Shown here one piece after another: positions 1 to 49,944 of a DNA stretch of 64,000 nucleotides. Both the position numbers and the translations under genes were made by a program. The stretch spans positions 496,001 to 560,000 of the forward strand of contig CBFDEM010000043.1 in assembly GCA_965603825.1 (NCBI GenBank). The letters run 5' to 3'. How positions within the stretch are numbered: position 1 is the stretch's first letter; each line of letters starts with the position of its first letter. The stretch is from Blepharisma stoltei ATCC 30299 (lineage: Eukaryota > Protista > Ciliophora). The notes beneath the pieces are model-generated. The model was not told the origin of the DNA. It was given only the letters and a program-made list of their open reading frames with translations, and did not search any database.

Positions 1-870
1 ATCGAGTCATTTTTAGAAATCACTCTCTCAGTTTTTCTCCAGTGAAGAGAAATCTCAGAACCAAATCAAAATATAGGCTACCTCTCATTGATTTTAAGTT
101 TTATTACTATGGCTTATCTAATACTAACATTTTTGCTTATTATTTGGCAAGTTACGCTGAAGTCAGAGGAGGAGCTTACTACAGAGGTTCATGAAGTACG
201 ATTTGGCACATTATATGAGGGCTTTAAAACTAGCTCAAAACTAACAGCATCATTCCTTTTATTACAAAATGCACGCAGAGTGCTCTTTGCTATTTTTTGT
301 GTATTTTTATATGAGTATACAATTATTCAAGTTACACTTTCAGCTGTCTTATCATTTATCTATACAATTTCATTAGTTCTATTAAGACCTTTCAAATCAA
401 AAATTTTAGGCAATGGTCTCCACATATCTAGCGAATTTTGCTATTTTTCTGCACATTGTATGATACTTAAGTTTTTAGATGACCAATTATCTGACAACGA
501 CAGGGTAAGGCTAGGCTGAATCGTTATTGCTCTATTATGTTTTTCTGTGATGCTTCATATATTTGCGCTTTTTATAACACAGATTATTAGCATTATCCAA
601 GGAATTAAGCATCTTAAAAACAATTTTATGAAAAATTTTGCTAATAAATTTGTGCACATTGGAAAGTCAAATTTAAAGTCTATTATATTAGATAATAAAG
701 TTTCACCAAAAAATCAGGAAAATGAAAGTGAAAGTTTTACTAAAAGGAAAAGAAAGCATATAGAAATTAAAGATGAAATCCACTCATTTAGAAAGACCAA
801 AATTGTCCCAATTGATGAAAGTTTATATACAGATACTATGGGCGATGAATTTTTCACAAGGAAAGAATAG
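1..870 (+). CDS. Surface receptor family copy 0: C-terminal TRP-like transmembrane region and tail (5' end outside the window)
   Basis: One frame from position 1 (IESFLEITLSVFLQ-W-REIS) through ORFs 88-519 and 547-870 when TGA=Trp. It has the same RFGTLYEGFK, LRPF and GWII motifs as the other copies and ends at TAG 868-870. Confidence 0.85.
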
Positions 871-1921
871 ATTATGTTTGGTTATTAAAATAATCATTAT
901 ATTTCATTTTTAATTTAGCCTATTATTTGAATACTCTTGTAGTTTGGGTATTAAAGAATATGACCTTTTGTATAAAAATTGGCAGACTATTTGTGTATTT
1001 TTATATTTCCTTATTGGAAAAGAGATTCATTTCTTCAGATTAATTGTTTATTATTTTCCAAGAAAATATTATTTATAGGTAAGAGTGATGGATTAATAAA
1101 ATAATAATTTGAAGTTATTAGATATATTTTTCAAAATATATGCTGAATCCTACTTGTAGCTATTTTAAAATATCCACAATAATTAAGATAAAACAGATTC
1201 TAAAAAATATTTTAATATATATTTCTTCTCCTATTTCTTAATTTTTCCCCAATAATTCTTAAATTAATATTTGTACTTGTTTAAACTTATCTGATTCTAG
1301 TTTTACAATTATTTGTATCAGCTAGCATTCAAAAGTGAGGTTTCACATCCAAATAATTTTTCAAATTGCATCTCTTAATCGAAAACTTTGGATAAATCTA
1401 GCGCAAGCTCTTTGGTAGCTATTCAATATCTCATTGGGCTTTGATTCTGATTTCTTCAATTAAATCCATGTTAAGTTTCAAAATAAAAGCTTGATTAAAA
1501 AAAATTACTATAAAATAATAATTTTTTTAAAATTTTTGCCCGCTCACTAAGGAACTGAGCCTCAAATACAGCATCACTCTTTAAAGTTATCGACTTGGAC
1601 ATATCCTATGTCAATTTTTTATATTGTATTGCATGCTAAACTTTAATCTCTAAAAAATTTAAATGGCTAATACTCATACAATCTTTTAAACTCAGCTTGG
1701 CTTCACTCTCTATACCATCTCTCTGCTTGAAGAGGCCCTGTGGGTATAGCTAAAGATGGACTGAAACTATTTAAATTGCAGGCAAGCCTCCCTTAGATTA
1801 TCGACTTCTACCAAATACCTCTCATATATTTTTAGCAATTATGAACTTTAGATTTTGATAACCTTCATGCTAATTTTCCCTCTAATTAATATTAAAAATA
1901 TATCTAAATAATATTAATTGC

Positions 1922-4900
1922 ATGGCTGTATGCGTATTTCTTTTAGTCTTTTTGTCTCAAACTGCATCAAGCTCTGATATCGTATCAATATTTCCACCGT
2001 ATCACTCTCAGTATGTTGATAGCTTTATTAACACAACAGCAGTGCAGCTTACAGAAGCAGTTTTAGGAGGAGAAGAAAAGCATACAACTTTTGGAATCTC
2101 TTTATGGGTCAAAATAATAGAACCTAGAAAGAGTGGTGATATTTTTTGATTGGAACATGGAAAGTAATTAATATTCAGAGGAGATTTTTTGCAATTTCCT
2201 TGTATTACTTATGTTTGAAAAAGTTCAGCAGCTTTCATTTTATATCTCCAGCTTTATACATTGTTCACCGAAGAAGACCAAAAATTATCTCTTCTTATTG
2301 TAAGCAATATTTAGACTCCTTCTGATAATTGAATATTTATAGCTTTCTCAGCAAGCTACGAAAAAAAATTGTTACTGTTTTATTGCAATAACTTAGGAAC
2401 TGAATCTTTCAATTCAGGAGTTTTGGAAGAGGAAGTAATTTTATCAAATGCGGTTTTATTATTTGGAATACAGAATTTCAGTGGGAGGATAGGCGACTTT
2501 AAGGTTCATAACAATATATTTAATGAGATTTCAGACTGACGTTTGCAATACTCAACTTCATGCGTAGAGGTAAGCTGTACAAGCTTGTTTCCAATTATAG
2601 AGTATGGAAAATGTGACCAACGATGTGGATCACAGCCCGAAACATTTTTGCCGATATTTCAGCCAACTTTATATTCAAAGACTCCTTATATGACTATTGA
2701 TAAAAAATCATACGTCTATAACCCGTGAAAGGAATGCAATGACTTTTCAATCACAGGGTGGATTCAAGTGCCAGCATGCCAAAATAAATCGGAAACTATT
2801 TTAGAAATTTCTAATAATGGCCATATTATAAGTATTGCAGTAAAATTAAAGAGCAGCAGCCTTTTAGCTCACTGTGATGTTTTAGAAGCAACAATTTACA
2901 GCTTTGAAAATAAAACTGATGATTCAGTTCAACTTATTTCTCCAAATTATATCGGAAATTGGTTCTTTTTTGCTATAACTTTAAATTCCACTACGAAGTT
3001 ATTTACGCTCTATTCTCAAAATAGTATTAGTGCTCCATCTGCCTCTTTTCCCTTAATTTCTTCATCAATTCCTTATGCCTACTCTGTTCTACCATTAGCA
3101 TCGTTCAGCTGGATTGTGATTGGAGGAACTCGTCTAGAGATTTATCCAGGGAATTATGCAGATTTTAGATTTTATCCTGGTAATGCTATTGATACTACTT
3201 TAATGCAATATAACAGCAATATATTCAGCGCTGCTACTTATCTTGATCCTCATTGCACTTTATGAGAGTCAATATGGTATTGCAAAGCATGTGAAATCGG
3301 GTATTTTGTTAAAAATGGAATATGCAATAGTAATTTATAAGTAGAATGCCACCCTTCATGCAATGGCTGCAGCTCTGATGACACAGAAGCTGATTGTTTG
3401 GCCTGCGCAAGTGGATATTATGCCCAGCCAGGCCATCCTTCATTGTGCTTTAATTATTGTCCATTAGGCTTTGTAAAGGATTCTTATCTTAACCAATGTA
3501 CAGGCACTCAAGGAGTTATTGCCAACATAAATTTTGACAACAATCTATCAGGTGATTTTATTTCTTCTTACGTTTATATACAATTTGGAGAATTATCTGA
3601 TGAGTATTGTCCAAAATTTGACTATTTAGATCCCTTGCCTGCCAACAAAAGAGGGATATTTATTCACTCTACATTAGTAAAAATAATCTCCCAGTCTCCT
3701 ACTCAAGAAGATAGGCTATTTAGTTCTGATTTTACTATTGAAATTTGATCGTTAGTTAATAATCATGGAACTTTATTTCGTGCAAATTGCTTCAGCAGCC
3801 ATAAATACTATGGCTACGATCTAGGCCCTCTATGAAACTTATATTTTGATTTCGGGTCAATGCTTTATGAGAAAATTTCTCTTCGCATATTAAAGCGTGA
3901 TGAAAGTCAAGAGACAATAATCTCACCATTGGAAAGCTCTTCGGAATGGGCTTTGTATTCTGTCTCTCTTACTTACGATGACATTACCAAGTCTACTAAA
4001 ATATTATTTGTCATCAATAAAAATTCATATACGGCTATTGTGTCAAATCATTATAAAGAGTTACCTGGAATGATTCATAGTATTGGAAATTTGAATGGAG
4101 ATTCATTCATAGGGTTTTTGTATAGTTTGGCAATGTATAACTATGGGAAAACTTATAATGAAATTTTGCCAAGTGTAGGCACTTGCAGCTCTTGCTCTGC
4201 TTGCCCAGCTGTCTTGAAGTCTTGTTTGCCAACTTGTAATGCAACTGAATATGTAGATGAGAATGGAAACTGCCAAAAGTGTCCAAGTGAATGCTCATGA
4301 ATATGCTCAAGGGCTGGGACTTGCAATCTTTGCTACGACGATTTATGCTATAAATGCACTAAATATGAAATTGGGACTTGCATCCAGTGTGTTGAGAATG
4401 CAGCTCTTAGCAGTGGACAATGTGAGTGCCAAAGTGGATATATAAAGCAAGGATCTCGATGTGTAGAAAAATGCAGCGATGGGTTTCATTTGGATGCAAG
4501 CACTCAATCTTGTATTGGCTGTCTTAGCAATTGTTTAAAGTGTAGCAATGGAGAAAGCTGCACAATATGTAAGACGGGATTTGTTGAGCGAAATGGAAAA
4601 TGTGAATGCTCTGACGGATATTTTTTAGACTCTTCAAATAACTGCTCAAAATGTGATATTTCATGCTTAACTTGCTCAATTAATTCCTCAAATTGCTCAT
4701 CTTGCATATGAAATTTGCCTATTCTATATGGCAATAAATGCTACCCATGCGATTCATTTGAAAGTTATTCCACCTATTTTATTATTCCGATTTCATATTA
4801 TACAGATGATTTAGTGTCTCAATTAGCCTCTAATTGCACTGAAATTTGTGGGGATGGAAGAAATATGGGACAAGCTCAATGTGACGATGGAAATAATAAA

Positions 4901-6592
4901 AATGGAGACGGCTGCTCTGAGAATTGTACAATAGAAACTGGGTGAACTTGCTCTGGAGGCAGTATAAGCTCTCCTGATATATGTAAAGATATAACTCCTC
5001 CTTTACCATTTCTTGCATATTTATTCGAAAATGGTTCAGGCTATCTTCTTGCGTTATCATTCTCAGAAAAAGTAAATATAACATCTGATTTATCAGAAAA
5101 TATTAAAATTACAATTGATGGGATAAAAATGTTTTCTTGGGCTATTTCATTAGAAAAATCAATTTATGAAGTCGCCTTAAATTTATATGAAAGCGTAGAA
5201 AGTGGGACAGGTGTGGAAATCAACTTTATTAATCCTAGTGAAATCGCTGATACGAGCGGTAATCAAATGAAAGAGAAAAAAGTAAAATCAATTTTGATTG
5301 CTCCATTCACATACAAAACTGCAGAAGCTATGAAAACTTCTATTACAACTGTAGCCATGGTTGCTGCTGCAGGAGCGGCTGCAGGATCTATATTTACAGG
5401 ATCTTTTAATTTACAAGCATTTTGGAGTATGCTCGAAATGATGCAGATACAAAATTATTTGATATTTTTATCTCCGCAATACCCTAATAACCTTATCACA
5501 TATCTTCGTACCTTAAGTATAGCAAATGGAAACTTTTTGCCTAATCCTTTTCAACTGTATTTAGTAAAAAATGACCCGTTTCCTGATCCTTCAAAAAAGT
5601 TTGCAGATGAAAATTTTAATACAGATTTCCTTATGAACGCTGGTCAGTTTGTAGCAGTATGGGCTATTATTTTGACTGGGCTCTCAATTTGTATAATTTT
5701 ATATAAAATAAGACCAAGCTTATCAATAATAAGATGGCTAAAAAGCTCCTTTTTCTATGCTATTTTACTCAGAACTGGAATCGAGTCATTTTTAGAAATC
5801 ACACTTTCAGTCCTTCTGCAATTAAGAGAATGCTCACAGCCAAACCAAGATATTGGCTATCTTTCATTGATTTTGACCTTTTTAACCATACTTTACCTGA
5901 TCTCTACTTTTGCTCTTATAGTTTGGCAAGTATCGTTAAAGCCTAAAGGACTGCTTGGGACAAAGTTGCATGAAAGAAGATTTGGAGTATTTTATCAAGG
6001 ATTTAAAAGAGATTCTAAACTAAAAGCTTCTTTCTTGCTATTCCAAAATATCCGCAGAGTCCTATTTCTTATTTTTTGTGTGTTTTTATATGAGCACACA
6101 ACTGTTCAAGTTTTATTATCAGCCTCCTTATCATTAACCTATACAATTTTATTAATTGCACTGAGACCATACGAGCAGAGATATTTAGGGAATTTTTTAA
6201 ATATAATCTGTGAAATTTTATATTTTGCTGCTCATTGCCTAATACTAAAATTTTTAGATAATCACATATCTGATGATTCTAAAACAAATCTTGGCTGGGC
6301 AATAATTGCACTCTTGAGTACTTCTTTATTACTCCATATACTATGCCTCTTTATAGTTCAGATCACAAATTTACTACAAGGAGTCAAACAACTTAAAGAT
6401 TGATTTCTTCAAAACTTTGCAAATAAGTTTTTAAAAGTCAAGAGAAGAATAATAATGAATGAAATAGAATCTAGTGACCTGAATATAGAATTAAGTAAAG
6501 AAGAAACCTATGAAGAAAAAGATTCAAGAACTCACCCTGATGGCAATTTTCTAAATATTGATACTAGTGGGGGGCAGCTATTCATAGGATAA
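1922..6592 (+). CDS. Copy 1: LamG-like x3 / Cys-rich / DUF4215-type / Ig-like / TRP-like multi-TM protein, ~1541 aa, three 15-nt introns
   Basis: ORF pieces at 1922, 2543, 2768, 3398, 3860, 4490, 4715 and 5129 share one frame and are broken only by TGA or by introns 2164-2178, 2300-2314 and 3330-3344. N-terminal signal peptide, CGDG..CDDGN..NGDGCS motif, stop TAA 6590-6592. Confidence 0.88.
2164..2178 (+). other. 15-nt intron 1 of copy 1 (gtaattaatattcag)
   Basis: GT..AG, A at position 10, contains an in-frame TAA; removal restores the frame. Confidence 0.85.
2300..2314 (+). other. 15-nt intron 2 of copy 1 (gtaagcaatatttag)
   Basis: Phase-0 GT..AG ending in an in-frame TAG; same position (just before the NWIF motif) in all full copies. 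Confidence 0.88.
3330..3344 (+). other. 15-nt intron 3 of copy 1 (gtaatttataagtag)
   Basis: Splicing gives NGICNKCHPSC; position conserved in all full copies. Confidence 0.88.
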
Positions 6593-7811: not shown

Positions 7812-10800
7812 ATGGCTGTATGCATATTTCTTTTTGCCTTTTTCTCTCAAACTGCATCGAGTTCTGATATCATATCAATATTTCCACCGTATTACTCTCA
7901 GTATTACTCTGTGCATTTTGATAGATTTAATAATGAAACAGCAATGCAGCTTACAGATGCAGTTTTAGGAGGAGAAGAAAAGCATACAACTTTTGGAATC
8001 TCTTTATGGGTCAAAATAATAGATCCTAGAAAGAGTGGCGGCATTTTTTGACTGGAATATGGAAAGTAATTATAATTTAGAGAAAATTTTTTGCAATTTC
8101 CTTGTATTTTTTATGCTTGAAAAAGTTCAACAACTTCCTATTTATATCTATCGGTCACGAATGAAGATGAAAGATTATCTCTTCTTATTGTAAGCAATAT
8201 TTAGACTCCTTCTGATAATTGGGTATTTATAGCTTTCTCAGCAAGCTACGAAAAAAAATTATTATTGTTTTATTGTAATAATTTAGGAACTGAATCTTTC
8301 AATTCAGGAATTTTGGAAAAGGAAGTGATTTTATCAAATGCGGTTTTATTATTTGGAATACAGAATTTCATTGGTAGGATAGGTGACTTTAAGGTTCATA
8401 ACAATATATTTAATGAGATTTCAGACTGAAGTTTGCAATACTCAACTTCATGCGTAGAGGTCAGCTGTACAAGCTTGTTTCCAATTATAGAGTATGGAAA
8501 ATGTGACCGATCATGTGAATCTCAACCCGAAACATTTTTGCCAATATTTCAGCCAACTTTATATTCAAAGACTCCTTATATGACTATATATAAATATTCA
8601 TACTTTTATAACCCATGAAAGGAATGCAATGACTTTTCAGTCACAGGATGGCTTCAAGTGTCAGCATGTCAAAATAGATCGGAAACTATTTTAGAAATTT
8701 CTAATAATGGCCAAAGCATAATTATTGAAGTAAAATTAAAGAGCAGTAGCCTTTTAGCTCACTGTGATGTTTTAGAAGCGACAATTTACAGCTTTGAAAA
8801 TAAAACTGATGATTCAGTTCAACTTATTTCTTCAAATTATATTGGAAATTGGTTCTTTTTTGCTATAACTTTAAATTCCACTGCGAAGTTATTTACGCTC
8901 TATTCTCAAAATAGTATTAGTGCTCCATCTGCCTCTTTTCCCTTAATTTCTTCGTCAATTACTTATGATTACTCTGTACTACCATTAGTATCGTTCAGCT
9001 GGATTGTTATTGGAGGAAATCACCAAGAGGTTTATCCAGGGAATTATGCAGATTTTAGATTTTATCCTGATAATGCTATTGATAATACTTTAATGCAATA
9101 TAACAACAATATATTCAGCGCTGCTACTTATCTTGATCCTCATTGCACTTTATGAGAGTCAATATGGTATTGCAAAGCATGCGAGATCGGGTATTTTGTT
9201 AAAAATGGAATATGCAATAGTAATTTATAAGTAGAATGCCACCCTTCATGCGATGGCTGCAGCTCTGATGACACAGAAGCTAATTGTTTGGCCTGCGCAA
9301 GTGGGTATTATGCCCAGCCAGGCCATCCTTCATTGTGCTTTAATTATTGTCCATTAGGCTTTGTAAAGGATTCTTATCTTAACCAATGTGCAGGTATTCA
9401 AGGAGTTATTGCCAACATAAATTTTGACAACAATCTATCAGGTGATTTTATTTCTTCTTACGTTTATATAAAATTTGGAGAATTATCTGATGAGTATTAT
9501 CCAAAATTCAATTTTTGAGATCCCTTGCCTGCCAACAAAAGAGGGATATTTATTCACTTTAGATCAGTAGAAATAATCTCCCAGTCTCCTACTCAAGAAG
9601 ATAGGCTATTTAGTTCTGATTTTACTATTGAAATTTGATCGTTAGTTAATAATCCTGGAGCTTTATTTCATGCGACTCACTTCAACAAGCATAATTACTA
9701 TGGCTACGATCTAGGCTCTCTATGAACTTTATATTTTGGCTTTGAAATGTTTGATGAAAAAATTTCTCTTCACATATTAAGGCGTGATGGAAGTCAAGAG
9801 AGAGTAATCTCACCATTGGAAAGCTCTTCGGAATGGGCTTTGTATTCTGTTTCTCTTACTTATGATGATATTACCAAGTCTACTAAAATATTATTTGTCA
9901 TCAATAAAAATTCTTATACGGCTATTGTGTCAAGTCACTATAAAGAGATACCTGGAATGATTCATAAAATTGGAAATTTGAATGGAAATTCATTTATAGG
10001 GTTTTTGTATAGCTTGGCAATGCATAATTATGGGAAAACTTATAATGAAATTTTGCCAAGTTTAGGGACTTGTGATTCGTGCAGCGCTTGCCCAGGGATT
10101 TTGAAGTCTTGCTTGCCTACTTGTGGTGAAACTGAATATGTAGATGAGAATGGAAACTGCCAAAAGTGTCCAAGTGAATGCTCATGAATATGCTCAAGGG
10201 CTGGGACTTGCAATCTTTGCTACGACGATTTATGCTATAAATGCACTAAATATGAAATTGGGGCTTGCACACAGTGTGTTGAGAATGCAGTTCTTAGCAG
10301 TGGACAGTGTGAGTGCCAAAGTGGATATATAAAGCAAGGATCTCAATGTGTAGAAAAATGCAGCGATGGGTTTTATCTTGATTCTGGTTCTCAATCATGT
10401 CTCAGCTGCCCAGAAAATTGTCTAAAATGCATGGATCAAAACAGTTGCATGATTTGCAAATCTGGCTTTTTTCCACAACATGGTAAATGTGAATGTGCAG
10501 CCGGATATTTTGCTGATTCTTCAAATAACTGCTTAAAATGTGGCGCTTCATGCTTAACTTGCTCAATTAGATCTTCAAATTGTACATCTTGCCCTTTAGA
10601 AGCACCGATTATTTACAGTAATAATAAATGCTATCCTTGCGATATATTTGAAGGCTATTCTAAAAATCAAGGGATTACGATTTCAGACTTTACAGAAGAT
10701 TTATTTGAAAAATTATCTAAAAACTGTGCCGAAATCTGCGGAGATGGAAAAAATATGGGACAAGCTGAATGTGATGATGGAAATAGAAATAATGGCGATG

Positions 10801-12344
10801 GCTGCTCTTCTAACTGTTTAATAGAATTTGGATGAAATTGCTTTGGGGGGAATGCAACTTTTCCTGACAGCTGTAAAGATGAAACCCCTCCTTCACCAAT
10901 TCTTACATATTTAAGTCAAAATGATAGAGGGTATCTTCTTACTTTATCATTCAGTGAAGCTGTCACTTTTGGAGCCGAGATATCAGAAATAATTGAAATA
11001 GAAATTGCTGGAATTATTAATTTCGATTGGTCTATATCTTTAGACGACTCTATATATATAATAGCATTGGAAATTTATGAAAATGTAGACAGTAAAATGA
11101 ATGTCACTGTAAATTTTATAGATCCAAGCGCTATTGTGGATATGCGTGGATTGGAAATGAAAGAAAGGCTGGTGAAAACAAATTTGATGCACTCCTTTGT
11201 ATATGAATCAGGAAATTTAATTGAAAAAGCCATAGATATGATAGCCATATCTGCAGTTGTGGCATCGTCAGTTGGGTCAGCATTCTCAGGCTATTTTGTC
11301 AAAAATTTTGATAATCAAGCATTATGAAGCATGATAGAAATGATGCAGATGCAATACTTTTTAATATTTTTATCACCAAAATATCCTGGCAATCTTTTAT
11401 CTTATATAAGTACGCTTAGTATATCAAACGGAAGTTTCTTGCCTAATCCATTTCAATGACTTTTAGCAGGGAATATTATTATTTCTGACACTCCTGAGAG
11501 CTATCCTAAAGACTTATTTATTGGACAATTTTTATTACTCTGATTGGCTACAATAATTGGACTTCCAACTTCTTTGCTCTTATTCAAGCTCTATCCAAGA
11601 GTTTCTATAGTAAGATGGCTCAGAAAGTCTTATTTATTTTCAATCCTATTAAGAGTAGGAATTTTTTCATTTTTAGAAATCACTCTTTTAGTCTTTCTCA
11701 AATGAAGAGAAGCTTTAGAACAAGACCAAGATATAAACTATATTTCTTTGATACTAGGCATTATAGGAACACTTTATATTGTTTTAACTTTTGCACTTAT
11801 TATTTGGCAAGTTGCATTAAAATCTGAAGAGAAGCTAACCGAAAAGCTACATCTAAAAAGACTTGGGACATTATATGAGGCATTCAAAAATAGCTCAAAG
11901 ACAGCAGCGTCATTTATTTTATTCCAAAACATTCGCAGAGTATTCTTTATTGCTTTTTGTGTATTTCTATATGGCTATCCAACTCTTCAAGTAGCACTTT
12001 CAGCTCTCTTATCATTGATATACATAGCTTCTTTAGTGATATTAAAACCATTTAAAGCAAAAGTATTAGGAAATCATCTACACATAGCTAGTGAAGCATT
12101 GCATTTTTCAGCACATTGCTTAATGTTTAAGCTTTTAGATCATAATTTGTCTAGCAATAACAGGAAAAATTTTGGATGGATTATTACGACTTTACTATGC
12201 CTATCTTTATTGCTTCATGCAGTAGCACTCTTTACTAGCCAAATTAATAAAATAGCCCAAGTTCTTAAACAACTAAAAGAAAAATTGACAGAGACTTCGT
12301 CAAGCGAGCCTGATCCCCAAGATGAATTAAAATTAAATAGTTAA
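7812..12344 (+). CDS. Copy 2, ~1495 aa; introns 8066-8080, 8190-8204, 9220-9234
   Basis: Single frame with TGA=Trp. The N-half is nearly identical to copy 1; the C-half diverges after ~10375 and has a shorter tail. Stop TAA 12342-12344. Confidence 0.87.
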
Positions 12345-17473: not shown

Positions 17474-17777
17474 GATAAGAATCTAGAATAGCGATTTCAA
17501 GATAAAAATAATTAATTTTTGTCTTATAATTAATATAATTTTTAAATAGCATATGAAATACTGATTAAGATGCTGCAGGAGTTGTTTCAGATGCTATAAT
17601 TGATGCAGCGCTACTGGATATGATGCTGAAGTTGTTGATAAAATCTTGCTGAAATTGCTGGTTAGAAAATTGTACGAACTTTGAGCTTTTTAAAATTTCT
17701 TAGTAATTTAAGAGTTAATAAAAATATAAAATAAAAACAAAATATTAAATACAAAAATCTTTAAGTTTATAATATAT

Positions 17778-22418: not shown

Positions 22419-22948
22419 GAGACTAATGAAATAAAATAATTTAGATATAAATTTAATAATGAATCTAATATAATTAAATTTGAAAAAAGAGTCTCATAAA
22501 GGTAATGTCATTGTTGCAGAGCTAGGAATTTAAGTGCTAAAAAATAATTAGTATTGAGTAGGGTGATATTTGATAGAGTTGAGCTAAGAAAAATTTTAGG
22601 AATTTTCTTCTTTATTTTCTAGTTGATATCTAACAATAAATATTTCTCTTGCTGTTAAAATTGTATAAATTGATATTTATTAAATAGTTATTCATAACAA
22701 ATAAGCATATAGAAGTTTTATAACTGCTTAAAAATGCACTATTCTAATATAATTTTAGTGCCATTATATATTAATATTACTATTCCAAATTCACCTAAAA
22801 TCTGGCAACTTTTTATTTTTTGCAACCGTCTTGAGGTGCAAATATTTATAATATATTTTTGATTGATATAATAGCTCAAATTTTATATAGACAAGATTTT
22901 ATACTCACAATAATTAGCATTTTGCAGTTTCTTATTAATATTAGTAAA

Positions 22949-30222: not shown

Positions 30223-30314
30223 ATATATTATAAACTTAAAGATTTTTGTATTTAATTTTTTGGTTTTTATAAATTGATATTTTTATTTATTCCTAAATCA
30301 ATTTTTTTGCATTT

Positions 30315-33300: not shown

Positions 33301-35119
33301 TCTCCAGATCGAGACATTTCCTCTATAGTTGCATGCCTCGAACCATCAAAATATAAACCCCTTTTATTAGCTGGATAAGGATCTAAAAAATAGAAATTTG
33401 GGTAATAATCATTTCCTTCCATTCCAAATTGCACTTTTATTCCAGGAATTTCAATTTTTCCTGATAAATTATCATCAAAATTTATACTTGCAATTAATCC
33501 TGGAGTACCCGAACATTGATTAAAAGAATAATCATATTCATAACCATATGGGCAATAATCAAAACACATAAAATACGCGCCTGGCTGAGCAAAATATCCA
33601 CTTGCACAGCTTAAACAATTAGCTTCTGTATCACCAGAGCTGCATGCTGCGCATGAATAATGGCATTCTATTTATTAATTACTTTGACAGATCCCATTTT
33701 TAAGAAAATACCCAATTTCGCACATATCACAGTACCATATTGATGCCCACAATAAGCAGTGTGGATCAAGATAAGTAGCTGCGCTATATATATTGTTATT
33801 ATATTCAATAAAGTTGTATCTATAAAATTATTAGGGTAAAACCGAAAATCTGCATAGTCTCCAGGGGAAATTGTATCGTTAAAACCACCGATATATATGT
33901 CCATATAAATATGATTAAATGGTAAAGCCGCATAAGTGTAAGTAACAGATGATGAAATTAGCGGAAAAAGTGATGAAGGTGGATTAATGCCGTTTTGGCT
34001 ATAAAGAGTCAATAATTTAGAGCCAGAGTTAAGAGTGATAGCAAAAAAGAACCAGCTTCCAATATAGCTTGAACTAGTTATTGATACTGAGTCATATGCA
34101 TCATTAGTGCCATCAGTGCTATATATTGTTGCTTCCAGCTTATCACAGTCAAAAGTAGATGAGCTTAAAGCTAATTCAATATAGACCTTAAATAATTTTT
34201 TGCTATATATCATTAAGAATGTAAAGCCTCCCGATGGGCATGACTCAAATTGAAACCATCCTGTAATCGAAAAGTCACCTCATAGTGCCGAGCTTATCTC
34301 ATAATAAACGCTATTACTGTAGTTAAACTGGTAAACTTCATCAAATACAGTTAAATAAGGAGAATCTGAATACAAAGCAGGACCAAACAAGGGGAAAAAA
34401 TTTTCAATTTGTGACTCACACCATTGATCGCATTTTCCATAATCTATGCTTGGAAATAAACTTGTACAGCTAACTGCAGCACAAGATGAGGAATATTGAG
34501 ACTTTCAATCTGAAACTTCGTTATAAATATTATTATGGATCCTAAAGTCACCAATTCTTCATTTAAATTCATAACTTCCTGTCAATATTAAAAATGAGTT
34601 TACTTTTATTGATATTTCTGAGTTGAAAAATCCTGATACATAGAATTCTGATCCTAAATTATTGTAGTAAAAAAGGCAAGATCTATTCTCAAAGCCAGCT
34701 GATATTCCAATAAATATTCAATTTGCAGAGATAGTCTAAATAAAGCATACATAAGGTAAATTTAGTACTGAAAAATTTTCATTCCAAAAATTAAGCCATA
34801 CTAATATAAATTCATGCGATAAGTTAGAATAAAAAAGACTAACAAAATCTTCGCTATCTCTTTCTTTAGCATCAGGAGGGATAATTCTAAATATTTGCCC
34901 AGGAATGAATACCTCAAAGATTTTGACCCAAAATGAAAGGCCAAATTTGTGTTGAATGCTATCTCCTGCTAAAACTGCTTCACTCAGTTTGATTTGAAGA
35001 GATGATGAATCGAAATTATAAGAATATTGAGGTGGGAATATATAAGAAACACTAGAACTAGCTCCTCAGCTGAGTTCTACAAAGAATAGGAGAAAAATCC
35101 AAGATGTCATAGTATTCAT
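30315..35119 (-). pseudogene. Copy 6 (inverted twin of copy 5) with a 1-nt frameshift at ~33805; introns 34736-34750, 33668-33682
   Basis: ATG 35119. It reads 'ttg aa tat aat aac' versus copy 5 'ttg cag tat aat aac'; ORF 33668-34213 loses homology at DTTLL|NIITIY. Downstream pieces share one frame to the stop at 30315. Confidence 0.72.
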
Positions 35120-35652
35120 TTTATTTTTATTAATAAGAAGATGCAAAATTCTGAATTTTAATTGTTGTGAGTATAAAATCATGTCTATATAAAATTTTAG
35201 ATATTATATCGATCAAAATTGGATTTTAAATATTTGCTCCCCAAAATGGTTGCCAAAATAAAATATTAATAAAAAATAAAAAAGTTGCCAGATTTTAGGC
35301 GAATTTGGAAAAGCGATATTAATATATAATGGCACTAAGATTATTAAGTAGGAGCATTAGAATAATGTATTTTTAAGCAGCTAAAAAATTTCATATGCTT
35401 ATTTGTTATAAATAAATTAATATTATACATTTTTAACAGAAGAAGAATATTTATGGATAGATGCCAACTAGAAAATTCCTAAAATTTTTCTATCAAATAT
35501 CATCTTGCTGCAATACTAAATATTTTTTCGCATTTAAATCTCCAGTTCTGTAGCAAAGGCCTTACCTTGTGAGGCTCTTTTTGCAAATTTGATTATATTA
35601 AAGATTGATTATTCAATTTATATCTAAATTATTTTATTTCATTAGTCTCCTA

Positions 35653-38600
35653 TTAGATGCTTCTTTGCTCTTGGCTTTGTGCCACAGTAGAATCATGATC
35701 AAGACCATGAATTTGTAAGGATTTGTCTTCCATTATTTGATTTCATTCCTGATTTGGCCTATGCGATTTAATTTCATTCAGAATGACTCTTCTTTTTCTA
35801 ATAACAAATTTATTTGCAAAACTTTTTAAAAACCAATCATATAGCTTTTTTATTCCATAGACTAAGTTGATAAGAATAGATATTATATGAAGTAGCAAAG
35901 AAAAGCTTAATAAGGATATTAAACCCCACCCAATATTTGTTCGATTATCATCAGATAAACCATCATCTAAAAGCTTCAGTATTAAACAATTAGAAGAAAA
36001 GTAACAAATTTCGCAAACTATATTCAGGCTGTTTCCTAAAACCGATTTTTCATATGGTCTCAATAATATCAATAAAGCTGTATAAATAAATGATGAAGTT
36101 ACTAAAAAAGCCACTTGCAAAATTACATGGTCATATAAAAATACACATAAGGAAACCAAAATAACTCTGCGGATATTTTGAAATAAAAGAAATGATGCTG
36201 CAAATTTAGAGTTTCTTTTAAATCCTGCATATAGCACTCCATATCGTCTTTCATGTGATGTTTTATTGAGCGTTTCTGCAGATTTAAATGTAATTTGGCA
36301 AATAATAAGCACAAAATTCAATAAAAGATAAATTGCTGCCAGAATGCTCAAAGCCAAGGAAAGGTAGCCGATACGCTGGCTTGGTAATGAAATTTCTCTT
36401 AATTGGAGAAAAGTTGAAAGTGTAGTTTCCAAGAAGGACTCAATTCCAATTCTAAGGAGAATTGAAAATAAAAATAAGCTTTTAAGGGATCTTATTATTG
36501 AATCGCTTGGCCTTACTTTAAATAATATCAAAGAAATAAGCAATCCTATTAAAATAGCAGTTCAAACCAATAGAAATTGCCCATAGTTCATGAGAAAGTC
36601 TGTGTTTAAATTTTCATCAACAAAATTCTGTGGAGGGTCTGGAAAAGGGTCAGTGTTGACTAAATATCTCGTAAACGGATTTGGCAAGAATCTCCCATTT
36701 GCCATTCCAAGTGCTTTTAGATATGATATGAAATTGTCAGGGTATTTCGGCGATAAGTATATCAAATAATTTTGGATCTGCATAGTTTCGATCATACCCC
36801 ATATCGCTTGCATGTCAAGAAATCCTATAGAAAATGTAGATAATATTGAAACAACTAGAGAAATGCTTACAGTAGTGGTTACTGCTGTTGTAACTGAAGA
36901 AGATATTACTTGGCCTGCTGTATAAATATAAGAATAAGACACCATTAATTTTGTAGAAACTGATTTTTCTTGCATTTCATTTCCATTCACATCAATAATC
37001 AAATTAGGATTTATAAATTCTAATTTTACGACAGTCCCAGCTGATGCATCTTCATGAAGATCTAAATCAACTATATATGTTGAGTTTTCTTTCGAAATAA
37101 TAGACCAGTCAAATTTTAAATTTTCAATTTCTATTTCAATATTTTTAGAGATTTCAATACCAAATGTAACAAGCTCATTAAATGATAAAGTAAGGCAATA
37201 ACCCAAATCGGTTTTACTTAAGTACGCAAGGATTGGATAAGGCGGAGTTGTGTCTTTGCACACATCAGAAGAATTTGCACTCCCTCCAAAGCAATATCAG
37301 CCAATTTCCACTTTACAGCTAGAAGAGCAGCCATCTCCATTTGCATTATTTCCATCATCACATTGAACTTGTCCCATATTTTTTCCATCTCCACAAATTT
37401 CAATACAATTAGAAGATAATTGTGACCATAAATCATCTGTAAAATAAGAAATCGGAATGGCAAAATAAGTAGAGTAGCCTTCAAATGAATTGCATGGATA
37501 GCATTTATTCGAATCATAGAGAATAGGTAAATCTGATATGCAAGAAGTACAGTTTGAAGGAATAATTGAGCAATTCGAGCATGAGATATCACATTTTAAG
37601 CAATTATTTGAAGAATCGCTAAAATATCCATCTGCACATATGCATTTCCCATTATATAAATTCAACCCATTTTTGCATACTAAGCAAGTATTCCCATCTC
37701 CGCATTTTAGACAGTTGATAAAGCAACTAAGGCACTCTTTTGTGATTAGATCAAAATAATACCCATCATGGCATGCTTTTACACATCGCACACCTTGCCT
37801 TCTATATCCATTTTGGCATTCACATTGTCCATTTTTTAGGATTGCATTCTCAACACACTGGATACAAGTCCCAATTTCATATTTAGTGCATTTATAGCAT
37901 AAATCATCATAACAAGGGTTACAACTGCTAGCTCTTGAGCATATGCCATGGCATGAGCTTGGGCATTTCTGGCAATTTCCATCTGCATCCACATATTCAG
38001 TTTTATCACAAGTTGGCAAACAATAATTTAAGACTCCTGGGCAAGCAGAACAAGAACTGCAAGTGCCTAGACTTAACAGGATCTCATTATAGCCTTTTCC
38101 ATAGTTATATAACGCAAAACTATACAGAAATCCATTTAATCCTGATCCTAAAAAATAGGTTAGACAAGAAACATCTTTATAATAGCTTAGAGCTATTTTT
38201 ACTTCATATTTTTCATTTCAAACAAGAGTAACTTGAGTATGTTTATATGAATCATCAAAGGAGACTGAAGCAGAATAAAAAGCTCATTCCTTATTTTTCT
38301 GCTCATTTTCATATAAACTCGCTTCAATTATCGAAGATTCTCTTGTAAGGATATTAAGACTAAGAATTTTCTCATTATGTCTTCGAAACAAGATATATGT
38401 TGCACCTGCAATATCTTGTTGGGCACTTAAAAATGATTGAGGGTCTCATTTAAATAGCATTGCTCAAAATTCAATCGTAAAATCAGAGCCTAGAATCCTT
38501 CTATTTTGTGTTGATTCTTCTAGCACAAATTGATCAGCTTCAGATTTACCTATATAGATTCCTCTTTTATTGGCCGGGAACAAACTATGATAATTTTGAT

Positions 38601-40314
38601 TATCAGTCTTAAAATAATCTATTAATTTGAGAGTGGATGCATTATAATCCAGCAGTAGATTGTTATCAAAGTTGATATTTGCAATAGAGCCTTGAGTTCC
38701 TGTACATTGGTTTAAAGTCGAGTCAGAAGTAAAGCCTAATGGGCAATAATCAAAACATATAGAAGGATGGTTTGGCTGAGCATAATATCCACTTGCACAA
38801 CCTAAACAATTTATTTCTGTGTCATCAGAGCTGCATGCAGCACATGAAGGGTGACATTCTATTTATTAATTACTTTGACATATCCCATTTTTAGCATAAT
38901 AACCAATTTCACAAGCACCGCAGTACCAAATTGAGGATCATGATGTGCAATAAGGATCAAGATAGGTAGCAGCGCTATATATGTTGTTATTATATTCAAT
39001 TAAAGTAGCATCTATGCTGTTTCCAGGATAAAATCGAAAGTCTGCATAATTTCCTGGATATTTTTGCTTCGGAGTTCCTCCAATATATATACCTTTATCA
39101 GAAGTAAAAGCTGGTGCTGTATATGTATAAGTAATTGAAGATGAAACAAGAGGGTAAGTAGCCGATGGAGGGTTAGGACTACTTTGGGTATAAATCTTTA
39201 ACAATTTAGAACTAGAATTAATAGTGACAGCAAAGAAAATCCAATTCCCAATATAATTGGCCCCATTAATGGCAGTCGAATCATAAGCTATATTAGTCCC
39301 ATCTGTGCTATATATTTTAGCTTTCATCATATCACAATTGCTTGCACTAGTCGCCAAATTTACTTGCAAATATGTCTTATGGGATTTTTCAATTTGAAAA
39401 AAAGTTGGCTCTTTGCATATAGAAAATTGAAACCAGCCTGTAATTGAATAGTCGCTTCATCCAATTGTAGGCACAGAAACATCATTATATACAAAAGATT
39501 GGCTATGAAAATAATATGGCAAATCATTTGAAGACAAATAAGGCGCATTTGCATATAATTTTGGCTCAAATAAAGGGAAAAACCATTCAGTTTGTGAAGC
39601 GCACCATTGGTCACATTTTCCATAATCTATGCTTGGAAACAAACTTGCACAGCTTACTCCTGCACAAGATGAGGAATATTGCAGTCTTCAGTCATAAAAT
39701 TCATTGTAAATGTTATTGTGGATTCTAAAATCGCTAATTCTTACTTGGAAAGAGTCAAATTCTAAAATTCGCAAGTGTGAGTTGACAGGTATTGATGTTT
39801 CTATATCAAAATCTTCTGAAATGTAAGACTCAGTTCCAAAATTATTATAATAAAAAAGGCATGATTTATTTTCAGTGCTTGCAGATATTCCGATAAATAT
39901 CCAGTTATCAGAAGGAGTCTATGTTATTTTTACATAAGATAGCTTCAAAATTGATGAGGGACCAGCATTTTCTTGTGCCCACTCTAAAAAGAAATAAAAA
40001 GATGATGATGGCAACAAATATGAATATTTAAGGCCAAGATAATTGTTAAATTTTCAATTTGATTTGGATTTCGACTTTGATTGGTCTATTAAAAATATAA
40101 ATTGGTCGCTTTTTATATCATATATTTTGATCCAAAAGGAAATTCCAAAGCTTGGCTGAATTTCTTCACCAGACAAGATTGCTTCTGTAAGCTTTATGTC
40201 AATATTAGTATTTCAATCTAAATATTGAGAGTATTGAGGTGGGAAGACTGAGGAAACGCTTGAAATTGCATTTATGCCAAGTTGGAGAAAGAAAAGAAGA
40301 AACACCCAAACCAT
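35653..40314 (-). CDS. Copy 7 (inverted twin of copy 4), ~1543 aa; introns 39919-39933, 38859-38873
   Basis: Single frame with TGA=Trp from ATG 40314 to TAA 35653-35655. Confidence 0.85.
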
Positions 40315-40390
40315 ATATATTATAGACTTAAAAATTTTTGTATTTAATTTCTTTGTTTTTATTAATTGATATTTTTATTCATTCCTAAGT

Positions 40391-41470: not shown

Positions 41471-44400
41471 ATGACCACAATGGGCTTTTTGGTTTTTCTT
41501 CTTTTTTTCTTTGTCTGCTTCAGTGCAGAAACCAGTCCAAGTGTCTATTCTATACTTCCGCCTCAATACTCTCTATTTTTCGGTGAATCCGCTGGTTTAG
41601 AAATCAAAATGACTGAATCATTTTTATCAGGAGACCAAATTCAACAAAAATTCGGCATCTCTCTTTGGGTTAAACTACCTGAAGTGGCAAGTGGGCCAAT
41701 ATTTACAATCCGTCTACCTAAAGCTGAAGAAAATACAATGACAAGAGGTGGAATTTTTGTTAGTCTTTCCTATTTATTTCATGTTTTAAAACTGGAATGG
41801 CTTAGTGCTGATAGTTATGGTTTTTCACTATTAACTTTACCTTATGTATGTTTTATTTAGGAATCTTCTGAAAATTGAATATTTATAGGAATATCAGCTG
41901 GCTTTGAAAATAAGTCCTGCCTTTTTTACTACAATAATTTAGGCTCAGAATTTTATACATCAGGATTTTTCTATGTAGAAATTTCAATACCAGTAAACTC
42001 ATTTTTAATATTGGGAAAAAATATGTATATATGAGGAAGAATTGGCGATTTTAGGATCCATAATAATATTTACAATGAAGTTTCTGACTGAAAGCTGCAA
42101 TATTCCTCATCTTGTGCAGCAGTTAGTTGTACAAGTTTATTCCCAAGCATAGATTATGGAAAATGTGATCAATGGTGCGCTTCAGAAGCGGAAAGATTTT
42201 TTCCTTTGTTTGAGCCTGTTTTGTATTCAAATACTCCCTATTTGACAATAGATGATAAATTTTATACTTTTGATACCGCTTCTTGGATTTATTATGATAT
42301 AAGCCCATCATTATGAAACGATTTTTCAATTACAGGATGGTTTCAATTTGAGCCATGTCCATTGGGAGGTTTTACATTCTTAATGATATATAGCAAAAAA
42401 TTATTTAAGGTCTATATTGAGTTAGCTCTAAGCTCATCTTCTTCTGACTGTGATAAGCTGGAAGCAACAATATATAGCACTGATGGCACTAATCATGCAT
42501 ATGACTCAGTATCAATAACTAGTTCAAGCTATATTGGAAACTGGTTCTTTTTTGCTATCACTCTTAACTCTGGCTCTAAATTATTGACCCTTTATAGCCA
42601 AAACGGCATTAATCCACCGTCATCACTTTTTCCGCTAATTTCATCATCTGTTACTTACACTTATGCGGCTTTACCATTTGATAGTACTGATATGGATATA
42701 TATATCGGTGGTTTTAACGATACAATTTCTCCTGGAGACTATGCAGATTTTCGATTTTATCCAAGCAATTTTATAGATGCAACTTTACTGCAGTATAATA
42801 ACAATATATATAGCGCAGCTATTTATCTTGATCCACACTGCTTATTGTGGGCATCAATATGGTACTGTGATATGTGCGAAATTGGGTATTTTCTTAAAAA
42901 TGGAATTTGCCAAAGTAATTAATAAATAGAATGCCATTATTCATGCGCAGCATGCAGCTCTGGTGATACAGAATCTAATTGTTTAAGCTGTGCAAATGGA
43001 TATTTTGCTCAGCCTGGCAACCCCTCTATGTGCTTTGATTATTGTCCATTAGGCTATGCATGAGATTACTCTCTTAATCAGTGCAAAGGCACCCCAGGAA
43101 GCATTGGGAGCTTAAATTTTGATGATAAATTATTAGAAAATTTTGATATTTCTGCTTTAAATGCAAAATTTGGTAATTATATAGATTATTACCCAGATTT
43201 TGATTATATAGATCCTTATCCTGCTAATAAAAGAGGAATTTACTTCAAGGAATTTTCATATATAGCAATAGATAAAACTTACCAATCTGGCATATTTAGT
43301 TCTGATTTTACAATAGAAGTATGGGCCTTATCATTTTCTTCAGAAGGTATACTTTTCACAGCATTAAAATTTGGTGCAGTTCATAGCTTTTACGATAATA
43401 CTGTTCAAAAAAATTTTTATCTTATTGAATTTTTACGAATTTTTATAGAAAAAAGAGCTCTTAAATTTTCAATTACAAATAAAGAAAATAGCTCACAAGA
43501 ACTAGTTTTACCATCTGCAAATGCAAATACAAGAGAATGGGAACTTTTATCTTTTTCTTTGTCTTTTGATCATTTATCTAAAACAAGCAAAGTTATAATT
43601 TCAAGAAATAGAAATTACTACCAAGAAATTATCACAAGCTATTATAAAGAAGTAGTTAACATGACTTACCATATTGGTAATGATATCCAAGGAGGCTGTG
43701 GGTTTATTGGATATATGTACAGTTTTTCTATGTATAACTATGGAAAAAGCTATAGTGAAATCATAGCAGGTTTAGGCACTTGCACTTCTTGTTCTGCTTG
43801 TCCAGGAGTCTTAAATTCTTGCTTGCCAACTTGTGGTCAAGATGAGTATGTAGATGAGAATGGAAACTGTCAAAAATGTCTAAGTAAATGCTCATGAACA
43901 TGCTCCAGAGCTGATACTTGCAATCTTTGCTACGATGATTTATGCTATAAATGCACTACATATGAAATCGGGGCTTGCATACAGTGCATTGCTAATGCCA
44001 TTTTAATAGATGGAAAATGCAAATGCCAGGGCGGATATATTAAACAGGATAATGAGTGCGTAAATAAATGTGGAGATGGATTTTATCTCGATTTTAATGC
44101 TCAAAAATGCCTCAGCTGCTCTAACAATTGCCTTAGATGCAATGATGGAGATTCCTGCATTGTATGCAAAAGCAGTTTTACAAATAATAAAGGAAAATGT
44201 GCCTGCATGAATGGGTATTTTTTTGATTCTTCAAATAAATGCTTAAAATGTGACAGCTCATGCATGACTTGTTCAGGTATTTCTTCAAACTGTACTTCTT
44301 GCGTTCCAAGCTTGCCTATTCTCTATGGCTCAAATAAATGCTATCCTTGTGATTCGTTTGAAGGCTATTCTAATTATTTTGCAATTCCGGTCTCATATTT

Positions 44401-46240
44401 TTCTGAAGATTTATTGTCTCAATTAGCTTATAATTGTATTGAAATTTGTGGAGATGGAAGAAATATGGGGCAAGCTCAATGCGATGATGTAAATAATGCT
44501 AATGGAGATGGCTGCTCATCTAGCTGTGCAGTAGAAACTGGATGGTCTTGCTTTGGAGGAAGCTCAAACTCTCCTGATGTATGTAAGGATATAACCCCTC
44601 CTTTACCAATTCTTATGTATCTAAGTGAAGAGAGTAAATGCTACCTTCTTTCTTTATTATTCAGCGAGCCTGTAGTTTTTACTTCTGAAATCTCGAAAAA
44701 TATTGATATAGAAATCGAAAGTATATTAAAATTCAGCTGGTCGATAACTGAAAAAAATTCTTTATTTATCATCACTTTAAGTATGCATGAAAGTGTGTCT
44801 GCAGGAACTAGTGTAAAAGTTATATTTAAAAATCCAAGCTCGATAGCTGATTTCAATGGAAATGAAATGAAAGAGAGCTCAGTGTCTACAAATTTGCTTG
44901 AATCTTTTGCATATACAACTGGTCAAGCAATCAAATCTTCAGTTATAACCGCAACAACAATAACTGCTGCTAGTTCTGTTTTAGGATCTTTATCAGCAGG
45001 GATTTTTATGGGATCTTTTAATTTTCAAGCTTTTTGGAATATGATTGAAATAATGCAAATCCAAAATTATTTGATATTTTTATCCCCGGAATACCCAGAT
45101 AATCTTCTCTCGTATTTAGAAGCGCTTGGTGCTGCAAATGGGAATTTTTTACCAAATCCTTTCCAGCTTTACTTAGTAAAAAGTGATCCATTTTCAGATC
45201 CTCCACATAAATTTGTAGAACAAAATTTTAATACTGATTTTCTTATGAACTCTGGTCAATTTATATTAGCCTGAGCTATTATTTTGGCAGGACTTCCAAT
45301 TTCTTTGTTTTTATATAAGCTCTGTCCAAGATTCTCATTAATTAAAAAAATCAAAAAATTATATTTTTTTTCAATTTTACTCAGAATAGGAATTGAGTCT
45401 TTTCTCGAAATCACTCTTTCAGCATTTCTCCAATTAAGAGAATTTTCACAACCAAGCCAAGATATAGGGTATCTCTCTTTAACTTTGAGTGTTTTAATAA
45501 TAGTTTACCTTGCCTCAACCTTTGCGCTAATAATTTGGCAAGTTACTTTGAAATCTAAAGAAACACTCAATATGAAGATGCATGAACAACATTTTGGAAC
45601 CTTATATGAAGGATTTAAAAGAGATTCTAGACTTAAAGTCTCTTTTCTTATATTTCAAAACTCCCGAAGAGTGCTATTTGTTGTTTTCTGTGCATTTTTA
45701 TATGATTATGCAATTATACAAATGGCACTTTCGCTCATTTTATCATTTACATATACAAGTTTCCTAATTTTATTAAGACCATATCAAAATTTGTATTTAG
45801 GAAATGGCTTGCATATATCTTGCGAACTTTTTTATTTTATTTCACATTGCTTGATGTTAAAATTTTTAGATGATAAAATATCAGATGATTATCGTACAAA
45901 TATTGGCTGGGCTATAATATCATTATTGAGTATGTCCCTGCTGTTCCATATCATAGCAATACTTATAGTTCAAGCCACAAATTTAATAAGAGGAATAAAA
46001 CAATTTAAAGAATGATTCATGAAAAATTTTGCAAATAAATTTACAAAAGCCAGGAGAAGGATTATTTTATCAAGTCAAATATCATCCAAGCCTAAAGAGG
46101 ATGCTGAGGAGATAACTGTTAATATGGCTTATTTTGAAGGAAGAACGCCTGAAAACATAAATGACGAGAGAGTATATAGTCTTGGAAGCACAGATATCAA
46201 TACTAAAGGTCCTTTTTATATTAATACTGATTCGCAATAA
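41471..46240 (+). CDS. Copy 8, ~1579 aa; introns 41846-41860, 42915-42929
   Basis: All pieces share one frame with TGA=Trp; stop TAA 46238-46240. Confidence 0.87.
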
Positions 46241-48251: not shown

Positions 48252-48279
48252 TTAAGAGTATAATAATTCTTAATAAAGC

Positions 48280-49902: not shown

Positions 49903-49944
49903 TTTTAGATAAAAATTAATAAAAATTATGCAAATAATAGTTAT

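Follow-up and report, generated by a model that had tools for sequence, protein, structure and literature searches.

Polycystin-1, PKDREJ and the sea-urchin REJ proteins carry a huge, lectin-like and adhesive ectodomain on a polycystin-type membrane domain, a combination believed to turn contact or ligand binding into calcium entry. The Flc/Pkd2 proteins (PF06011) are poorly understood, structurally unsolved putative calcium channels, and knowledge of them is mostly fungal; the comparators used here, which carry PF06011 (TRP) together with PF14558 (TRP_N), are S. pombe Pkd2, Trp663 and Trp1322 and S. cerevisiae Flc1-3. In the published AlphaFold model, S. pombe Pkd2 has nine membrane helices between an Ig-like "lipid-binding" domain and a disordered cytosolic tail; yeast Pkd2 sits at the plasma membrane, and the reconstituted S. 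pombe protein lets calcium through on membrane stretch. The fungal family is reported also to include Flc proteins of the endoplasmic reticulum (ER) or Golgi that are tied to flavin transport and calcium homeostasis (PMC9600462). Here we analyze an array of ciliate genes that appear to place such a membrane unit under a lectin-fold head, found in a 64,000-nucleotide stretch of Blepharisma stoltei ATCC 30299 (contig CBFDEM010000043.1, hereafter C43, positions 496001-560000; "the window").

We read these genes as a birth-and-death family of paralogous large surface membrane proteins, in which LamG-tipped sensors of ligands or contact stand on an Flc/Pkd2-type unit, and give this reading a probability of about one half. 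Each protein would start with a signal peptide and a head of three LamG (concanavalin-A-like) jelly rolls interleaved with disulfide-rich furin/VSP-like repeats, followed by a long Cys-rich stalk ending in DUF4215 and by an Ig/ML-like sandwich on the PF06011 membrane domain, with a short disordered cytosolic tail. The LamG tips would bind extracellular ligands (glycans or proteins of prey, partners, the substrate or the cell's own coat), and the Pkd2/Flc-type unit would couple that binding to membrane tension or calcium entry, as in fission-yeast Pkd2, with paralogs differing chiefly in ligand specificity. The array itself would be an ordinary multigene family that recombination remixes now and then, not a programmed generator of diversity.

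The last ~550 residues resemble fungal Flc/Pkd2 in being predicted to fold as an Ig-like sandwich on a multi-helix membrane domain with a disordered tail. However, about 1,000 residues of LamG and Cys-rich sequence precede the sandwich, which in the fungal proteins directly follows the signal peptide; the profile similarity is marginal (24-32 bits, at profile positions about 155-410), PF14558 has no match, and the genes form a tandem array. Polycystin-1, PKDREJ and REJ share the logic of an adhesive head covalently attached to a membrane domain, but their membrane part is not homologous, and the Blepharisma proteins contain no GAIN/GPS, PLAT or PKD repeat. With the LG arrays of neurexin and laminin the likeness is one of shared fold and not of orthology: three LamG jelly rolls are parted by small Cys-rich modules (epidermal growth factor-like in those proteins) and fold hits run over the full 800 residues, whereas sequence identity is 7-14% and the anchor is multi-pass, not a single helix. 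Rapidly evolving gene families have been reported in Tetrahymena (PMC6564038); such tandem surface-protein arrays of other ciliates are likewise lineage-specific expansions, in the somatic genome, of genes for large membrane proteins, but with other domains, and for the Blepharisma family positive selection is not demonstrated. Our literature search found no account of proteins combining LamG and PF06011 in ciliates, and in the genome paper (PMC9942806) the main text lacks this array and the supplement lacks these domains.

Lectin-fold head and membrane unit

An earlier reading of the window from its letters (the original prediction) had proposed ten paralogous receptors with three LamG modules, Cys-rich repeats and a TRP-like membrane region. 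The domain plan is given here for one intact gene, g9, in window positions.

41471-41536, plus strand: signal peptide
41540-42070, plus strand: LamG1
42200-42769, plus strand: LamG2
42818-43180, plus strand: Cys-rich I
43223-43744, plus strand: LamG3
43763-44536, plus strand: Cys-rich stalk, including DUF4215 at 44417-44527
44543-44905, plus strand: Ig/ML-like sandwich
44918-46090, plus strand: helical membrane domain
46091-46237, plus strand: tail

A structure model of g9 residues 1-800 (19-row alignment; predicted local distance difference test, pLDDT, 74.3) contains three strand-rich modules, at residues 24-193, 239-426 and 580-745, and, between the last two of these, short beta-hairpin modules (452-557). 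Its Foldseek matches are neurexin-1alpha LNS1-6 (E 3e-18), laminin LG1-3 (E 1e-15) and laminin alpha2 LG1-3 (E 2e-15), with hits spanning 756-809 columns, followed by laminin LG4-5 and Gas6 LG pairs; a language-model search with the same residues returned Laminin_G_3 in 25 of 30 hits. Pfam scans were run on TGA-free exon pieces for the window copies and on database proteins otherwise, with cut-offs of 27.6 bits for Laminin_G_3 (PF13385), 27 for DUF4215 (PF13948), 28.5 for PF06011, 28 for Furin-like_2 and 31.4 for VSP. Window copies reach at best 13 bits for Laminin_G_3 (an exon piece), and their full-length proteins give no match at E 0.05. The profile does pass its cut-off in relatives: at the LamG1 position in the metagenome proteins P0007 and P0008 (34 and 39 bits), at LamG2 in the paralog P0161 (45.4 bits) and at LamG3 in the paralog P0002 (46.1 bits). 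The three predicted LamG modules are thus borne out, by a jelly-roll fold found three times (AlphaFold/Foldseek) and by relatives that carry Laminin_G_3 at all three positions. The signal peptide, predicted for each full copy, was recovered as a hydrophobic, signal-like N-terminal segment in four of the five proteins scanned for hydropathy.

In the Cys-rich parts the alignment has invariant Cys columns. DUF4215 scores 22.0-26.2 bits in window copies, 29.9 in the upstream paralog P0161 and 29.4-31.6 in the relatives P0005, P0006 and P0011. Of the furin-like and growth-factor-receptor profiles considered (PF15913, PF00757 and PF14843), Furin-like_2 scores 18.9 bits in g3, below its threshold, and VSP (CXXC repeats, 18-27 bits) and a Big_5 match also stay below theirs.

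The membrane unit was modeled on the C-terminal 557 residues of g2 (985-1541; 56-row alignment, pLDDT 90.8, predicted template-modelling score 0.83) and consists of a beta-sandwich (9-125), helices (133-520) and a low-confidence disordered end (526-557). The sandwich matches bacterial Ig-like domains (SbsC, Z 8.9, root-mean-square deviation 3.0 over 92 residues; Foldseek, VIA-align), so the predicted Ig-like domain is supported at the level of fold. For the helical part, PF06011 is the sole recurring family: the g8 membrane domain scores 31.7 bits, above the cut-off, the other window copies 24-28 bits, and 25 of the 56 aligned relative membrane domains match it (best E 9.6e-13). The best match in the ESM Atlas is a fungal cluster with PF06011 in 98% and PF14558 in 97% of its members, aligned over 438 residues (query 26-502; TM-scores 0.64/0.56); further Atlas rows are protist and animal clusters with the same membrane unit under other Cys-rich heads.

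Searches of solved structures gave little for this part. Foldseek against the PDB found no match for it, and neither did a profile search of PDB sequences; structural alignment returned only generic seven-helix bundles, with Z of 6.3-7.7, under the level that the tool states as noise for helical proteins. Kinship with rhodopsin and the G-protein-coupled receptors was discarded, these being generic seven-helix matches at a VIA-align Z of about 7. No TRP or polycystin channel chain appears among the Foldseek and VIA-align matches listed. The predicted TRP-like region therefore stands as a member of the Flc/Pkd2 family PF06011 (g8 above the cut-off, TM-score 0.64), but canonical six-helix TRP channels are not matched; the membrane motifs quoted for it are present in the 56-sequence consensus. 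By hydropathy, the last 450 residues contain seven to nine hydrophobic helices. There are probably nine membrane helices, a count and topology read from secondary structure and hydropathy, not from coordinates, and nine fits because the head would then lie outside and the basic tail inside. Across the 56 membrane domains (numbered as P0157:985-1541), near-invariant polar residues fall in predicted helices: Q301, S316 and E432, in helices 291-303, 311-339 and 421-446. Within the PF06011 fold, they are candidates for residues of the pore or of gating. Two invariant prolines, P189 and P417, lie just beyond helices.

Several points weigh against a reading as receptors on a channel-like unit. The window copies reach Pfam cut-offs only marginally, and the ectodomain model is of medium confidence (pLDDT 74, 19-row alignment). 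Structure and profile searches of the PDB found no solved PF06011 structure, and the channel nature of the family, carried over here by analogy, comes from one reconstitution study of yeast Pkd2, while Flc members are called flavin carriers or calcium-homeostasis factors. The contigs taken as RNA (below) give neither expression level nor strand, and those aligned to the g5 region show no explicit splice joint.

The best surviving alternative, which we consider unlikely, is that these are adhesion, coat or secretory-organelle proteins (of extrusomes, pigment granules or the cyst wall) in which PF06011 would anchor the protein, serve trafficking or homeostasis, or work as an Flc-type carrier instead of forming a gated channel. 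The Pkd2-like unit, sandwich included, is the best conserved part of the protein and carries the strongest constraint (dN/dS, or omega, 0.24-0.26), which together with the near-invariant Q, S and E in helices of 56 relatives is more than an anchor needs; yeast Pkd2, moreover, is a calcium-passing protein of the plasma membrane. What speaks for the alternative is the company these domains keep: LamG and Cys-rich repeats are typical of matrix and adhesion proteins, the top folds are laminin and neurexin, the fungal family includes the ER and Golgi Flc proteins (PMC9600462), and canonical TRP and polycystin structures are absent among the matches listed.

Gene models, layout and transcription

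The genome searched (41.46 Mb, 64 contigs) is described as 64 telomere-to-telomere macronuclear (MAC) contigs assembled from HiFi reads, with UGA = Trp and introns mostly of 15-16 bp (PMC9942806). In the window, which is AT-rich (GC about 0.30-0.35), the summed long open reading frames (ORFs) grow from 32.7 kb to 50.3 kb once TGA is counted as Trp; the standard code and a reading of TAA/TAG as Gln were discarded in favor of this one. Elements of 15 nucleotides (nt) of the form GTA...AG part pairs of ORFs in the same frame, and each carries the sole stop. Gene models were made by walking upstream from the stop codon and excising 15-nt GTA...AG introns that hold in-frame stops. The spliced models of g2, g3, g5 and g9 equal the deposited proteins P0157, P0003, P0160 and P0159 at every residue, which independently validates code, introns and starts; the matching database proteins are from Blepharisma stoltei and were deposited as "unnamed protein product" or "Uncharacterized protein". 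The original prediction that the family becomes readable with TGA as Trp and 15-nt introns removed is therefore upheld by ORF gain, exact database matches and the genome paper alike. Joined spliced models were used for alignment, dN/dS and trees, with the frameshifts of g6 and g7 bridged by N (X in protein). The loci of the window are as follows.

1-870, plus strand: g1, last 289 codons and stop (membrane domain and tail); gene start at C43:492080; full protein P0158, 1586 residues
1922-6592, plus strand: g2, intact, 1541 residues (P0157); exons 1922-2163, 2179-2299, 2315-3329, 3345-6592
7812-12344, plus strand: g3, intact, 1495 residues (P0003); exons 7812-8065, 8081-8189, 8205-9219, 9235-12344
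12773-17473, plus strand: g4, intact model, 1551 residues, three 15-nt introns; exons 12773-13011, 13027-13141, 13157-14201, 14217-17473
17778-22418, plus strand: g5, intact, 1536 residues (P0160); exons 17778-18158, 18174-19203, 19219-22418
22949-27753, plus strand: g6, full length, 1-nt deletion near 23386 relative to g7; introns 23318-23332, 24386-24400
28550-30168, minus strand: g10, relic made up of a short N-terminal fragment and a frameshifted membrane half
30315-35119, minus strand: g7, twin of g6 in inverted orientation; compared with g6 it lacks 1 nt near 33805; introns 34736-34750, 33668-33682
35653-40314, minus strand: g8, intact, 1543 residues, inverted twin of g5 (88% amino acid identity); exons 39934-40314, 38874-39918, 35653-38858
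41471-46240, plus strand: g9, intact, 1579 residues (P0159); exons 41471-41845, 41861-42914, 42930-46240
17717-27773, plus strand: left arm of an inverted duplication (g5 and g6), 10.1 kb, 92.9% identical to the right arm
30297-40379, minus strand: right arm of the inverted duplication (g7 and g8)

A tblastn search with g9 thus finds ten family loci within 1-46240, as predicted; they comprise six intact full-length genes of 1,495-1,579 codons (g2, g3, g4, g5, g8 and g9), the 3' part of g1, the frameshifted g6 and g7 and the relic g10, so that two of the supposed ten paralogs are frameshifted and one is a fragment. Nor does the array begin at the first base of the window: its real start is C43:486483, two genes upstream, where a further copy, g0 (P0161), occupies C43:486483-491348, and the 8 kb preceding g0 contain no family member. 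From there the whole array runs over 11 loci and about 56 kb; two dispersed copies lie outside it, on contigs C16 and C33.

The deposited annotation is corrected at four loci (g4, g6, g7 and g10). The deposited form of g4, P0174, is only the last 1052 residues; that of g6, P0151, is N-truncated (1294 residues), and that of g7, P0001, is only a C-terminal part (1084 residues). At the DNA level g6 and g7 are 95.4% identical, and each is one base short relative to the other, at different sites. Both frameshifts are probably real, since the assembly is from HiFi reads and neither site lies in a homopolymer run.

By protein identity the copies fall into the groups {g2, g3 | g4}, {g5, g8} and {g6, g7, g9}. 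Comparison of the window with itself shows direct duplicate segments at 1561-5062/7473-10952 (87%) and 3944-6657/14816-17546 (89%), beside the inverted duplication. The 2.5-kb center of the latter is occupied by the relic g10, whose DNA matches the 3' halves of g5 and g8 at 91% identity; its position and identity look as if the palindrome arose by a break within a g5-type gene.

For transcription, 6,000 letters were compared with contigs from three runs of one study (X7, X8 and X11), whose RNA label is guessed, and from a DNA run (X1). Contigs of X7, X8 and X11 tile g5 from 17782 to 22457 (ATG at 17778, stop ending at 22418). The spacer at 22500-23299 is empty in these putative RNA runs, and X1 covers every bin. 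Since the putative RNA contigs span g5 and leave out the spacer that follows, which the contigs of the DNA run do span, g5 appears transcribed. One X8 contig begins exactly at exon 3 of g5 (19219) with three unaligned leading letters, and another begins 4 nt before exon 2 of g6 (23333) with seven unaligned letters and one mismatch; both starts are as a spliced transcript would give. X1 carries letter variants in g5, at 20257 (G>A, 71 of 101 word depth) and at 21317-21565, which could stem from g8 contigs placed on g5, or else from another haplotype or strain; ATCC 30299 has been called virtually homozygous (PMC9942806).

Selection and recombination

Omega was estimated by the Nei-Gojobori method under the TGA = Trp code. 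It lies at 0.32-0.39 in five pairs, about 0.35 overall; the following domain values were pooled from three young pairs, with 95% bootstrap intervals in brackets.

LamG1: omega 0.51 (0.34-0.78)
LamG2: omega 0.33
Cys-rich I: omega 0.17
LamG3: omega 0.59 (0.38-0.85)
Cys-rich stalk: omega 0.29
Ig-like sandwich: omega 0.24
Membrane domain: omega 0.26
Tail: omega 0.69

In no domain does omega exceed 1, and for LamG1 and LamG3 the whole interval lies below 1. These two modules are the least conserved parts of the protein, with 27-37% identity across lineages. Loops exceed strands (0.60-0.66 versus 0.14-0.55), with intervals that include or fall below 1, and 30-codon windows reach 1.0-1.7 only in LamG1 (about 75-115 and 160-190), in LamG3 (about 574-675) and in the tail, each resting on 1-10 synonymous changes. 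Judged from these values, the LamG heads may be relaxed or may hold a minority of positively selected sites. Overall, selection is purifying, with some relaxation in LamG1 and LamG3, and no part of the protein has an omega significantly greater than 1. Between the main lineages dS is saturated, which indicates that these lineages are old; the omega of 0.32 for g6/g7 implies that their frameshifts are recent.

Two recombination events stand out.

4232-4490, plus strand: junction zone in the chimeric g2, where the Cys-rich stalk begins; best breakpoint 4468-4490
42371-42679, plus strand: conversion tract of 309 nt in LamG2 of g9, identical to g6 23842-24150

The chimera is g2, which is g3-like up to about 4468 and g4-like from about 4490. 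In a sliding profile, g2 is 76-97% identical to g3 up to about residue 790 and 86-95% identical to g4 beyond it, and informative sites divide 703:67 (g3-type to g4-type) left of the breakpoint and 71:608 right of it. Trees agree: the N-half joins g2 with g3 (100/100), the C-half joins g2 with g4 (100), and the remainder of the two trees is the same. Branches of the N-half are two to three times longer than those of the C-half, so that both branch lengths and the identity profile confirm a faster-evolving ectodomain on a conserved membrane half.

Between g3 and g4 themselves identity is 32-68% throughout, save in one shared conserved block, where g3 10119-10222 and g4 15107-15210 are identical over 104 nt (65% DNA identity otherwise), with a counterpart in g2 at 4232-4335. 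The block lies at the start of the stalk, about 130-250 nt upstream of the chimera junction, and roughly half of the divergent pairs have their longest stretch of identity there. The block may be a crossover substrate or recombination hotspot, or it may reflect constraint at the nucleotide level. The 309-nt tract, on the other hand, marks a recent gene conversion, because g6 and g9 are only 78.5% identical overall and an identical tract of this length has a chance of about 3e-30; g7 differs within it, which makes the conversion younger than the split of g6 and g7. Reshuffling by recombination, as originally predicted, is thus seen in the g2 chimera and the tract, but there is only one clear module swap among 11 full-length copies.

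These data bear on the larger claim of the original prediction, a dedicated variable recognition repertoire (for prey, mates or self/non-self) with diversifying LamG tips and combinatorial shuffling of halves, which we hold to be improbable. A lectin-fold head is indeed fused to a conserved PF06011 unit and evolves faster. Omega in LamG1 and LamG3 is roughly double the value for the stalk and membrane unit, and local windows reach 1.0-1.7. The claim is only partly supported, however, because selection is purifying overall and nowhere, loops included, significantly above 1. The module swap right at the border of head and stalk, together with the conversion tract, would suit shuffling, but the trees of the two halves agree except for g2. 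Pseudogenes suggest turnover, and the expansion is lineage-specific, with solitary relatives elsewhere; yet that turnover must be slow, since saturated dS separates the main lineages. All copies, moreover, are somatic, and nothing points to selective expression. Mating in Blepharisma relies on two gamones, and we know of no link between them and the LamG/PF06011 family, which counts against the repertoire as well.

A bolder extension of the sensor reading, which we rate as a long shot, would make the family a ciliate counterpart of the polycystin-1/REJ receptor-channels, in which paralog-specific LamG ligands (prey glycans, a partner's coat or the glycoprotein gamone 1) gate or recruit a calcium-permeable unit. 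If true, Blepharisma would possess a small recombining repertoire of contact or chemosensory receptor-channels. The system is attractive in that a complete PF06011 unit sits under a large, faster-evolving lectin-fold head, in a recombining array of a giant, experimentally tractable ciliate. Should the head control the membrane unit, PF06011 would have a naturally receptor-operated form, which would also open a way to ciliate receptors for prey, partners or gamones; should it not, the array would still be a clean case, within the somatic genome of a ciliate, of birth and death through unequal crossover, inverted duplication and gene conversion.

That the array consists chiefly of degenerating duplicates that no longer serve a function, as two frameshifted copies and a relic among ten loci might suggest (frameshifts outside homopolymers, in a HiFi assembly), is very improbable and largely refuted by seven uninterrupted loci (six complete 1,500-codon frames with conserved intron positions and the 289 codons of g1), by an omega of 0.3-0.4 in all young pairs, g6/g7 included, by the putative RNA contigs over g5 and by relatives of the same architecture in other ciliate-like contigs.

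Relatives and flanking genes

An exhaustive search of representatives yields 420 proteins at E <= 0.001, and most of those looked up are metagenome proteins; word-based homologue searches return almost only B. stoltei proteins. Relatives share the membrane unit, and their heads differ (LamG, multiple DUF4215, furin-like or none recognized). Within B. stoltei, a related membrane domain of about 25% identity occurs on contigs 61, 48, 29 and 6. The nearest kind in the genome is P0052, a 3,455-residue "Laminin G domain-containing protein" on a 640,880-bp contig with the shared membrane unit at residues 2903-3304; six further membrane-unit hits lie on contig 61. Like the array proteins, this clustered kind (contig 61) puts a LamG and Cys-rich head on the same membrane unit; unlike it, with which they share about 25% of membrane-domain residues, the array proteins keep a fixed three-LamG plan of 1,500-1,600 residues, and their array includes an inverted duplication.

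P0007 and P0005, in contrast to the clustered copies, are solitary genes on gene-dense eukaryotic (ciliate-like) contigs, and with relatives solitary the array represents an expansion in the Blepharisma lineage. P0007 (L001:3829-8565, from an activated-sludge metagenome) encodes 1578 residues with LamG, DUF4215 and TRP in one uninterrupted gene, beside cyclin, NuA4 and Kelch genes; its contig may come from a ciliate that uses the standard code and has only one gene of this kind.

The array is followed on its right by ordinary genes, within 46908-62902: DJ-1/PfpI (46908-47477), DnaJ (48772-49902, minus strand), a RING finger protein (50002-51081, minus strand), a tRNA-binding domain (58061-58831, minus strand), RCC1 repeats (59061-59960, minus strand) and an acyl-CoA dehydrogenase (61688-62902).

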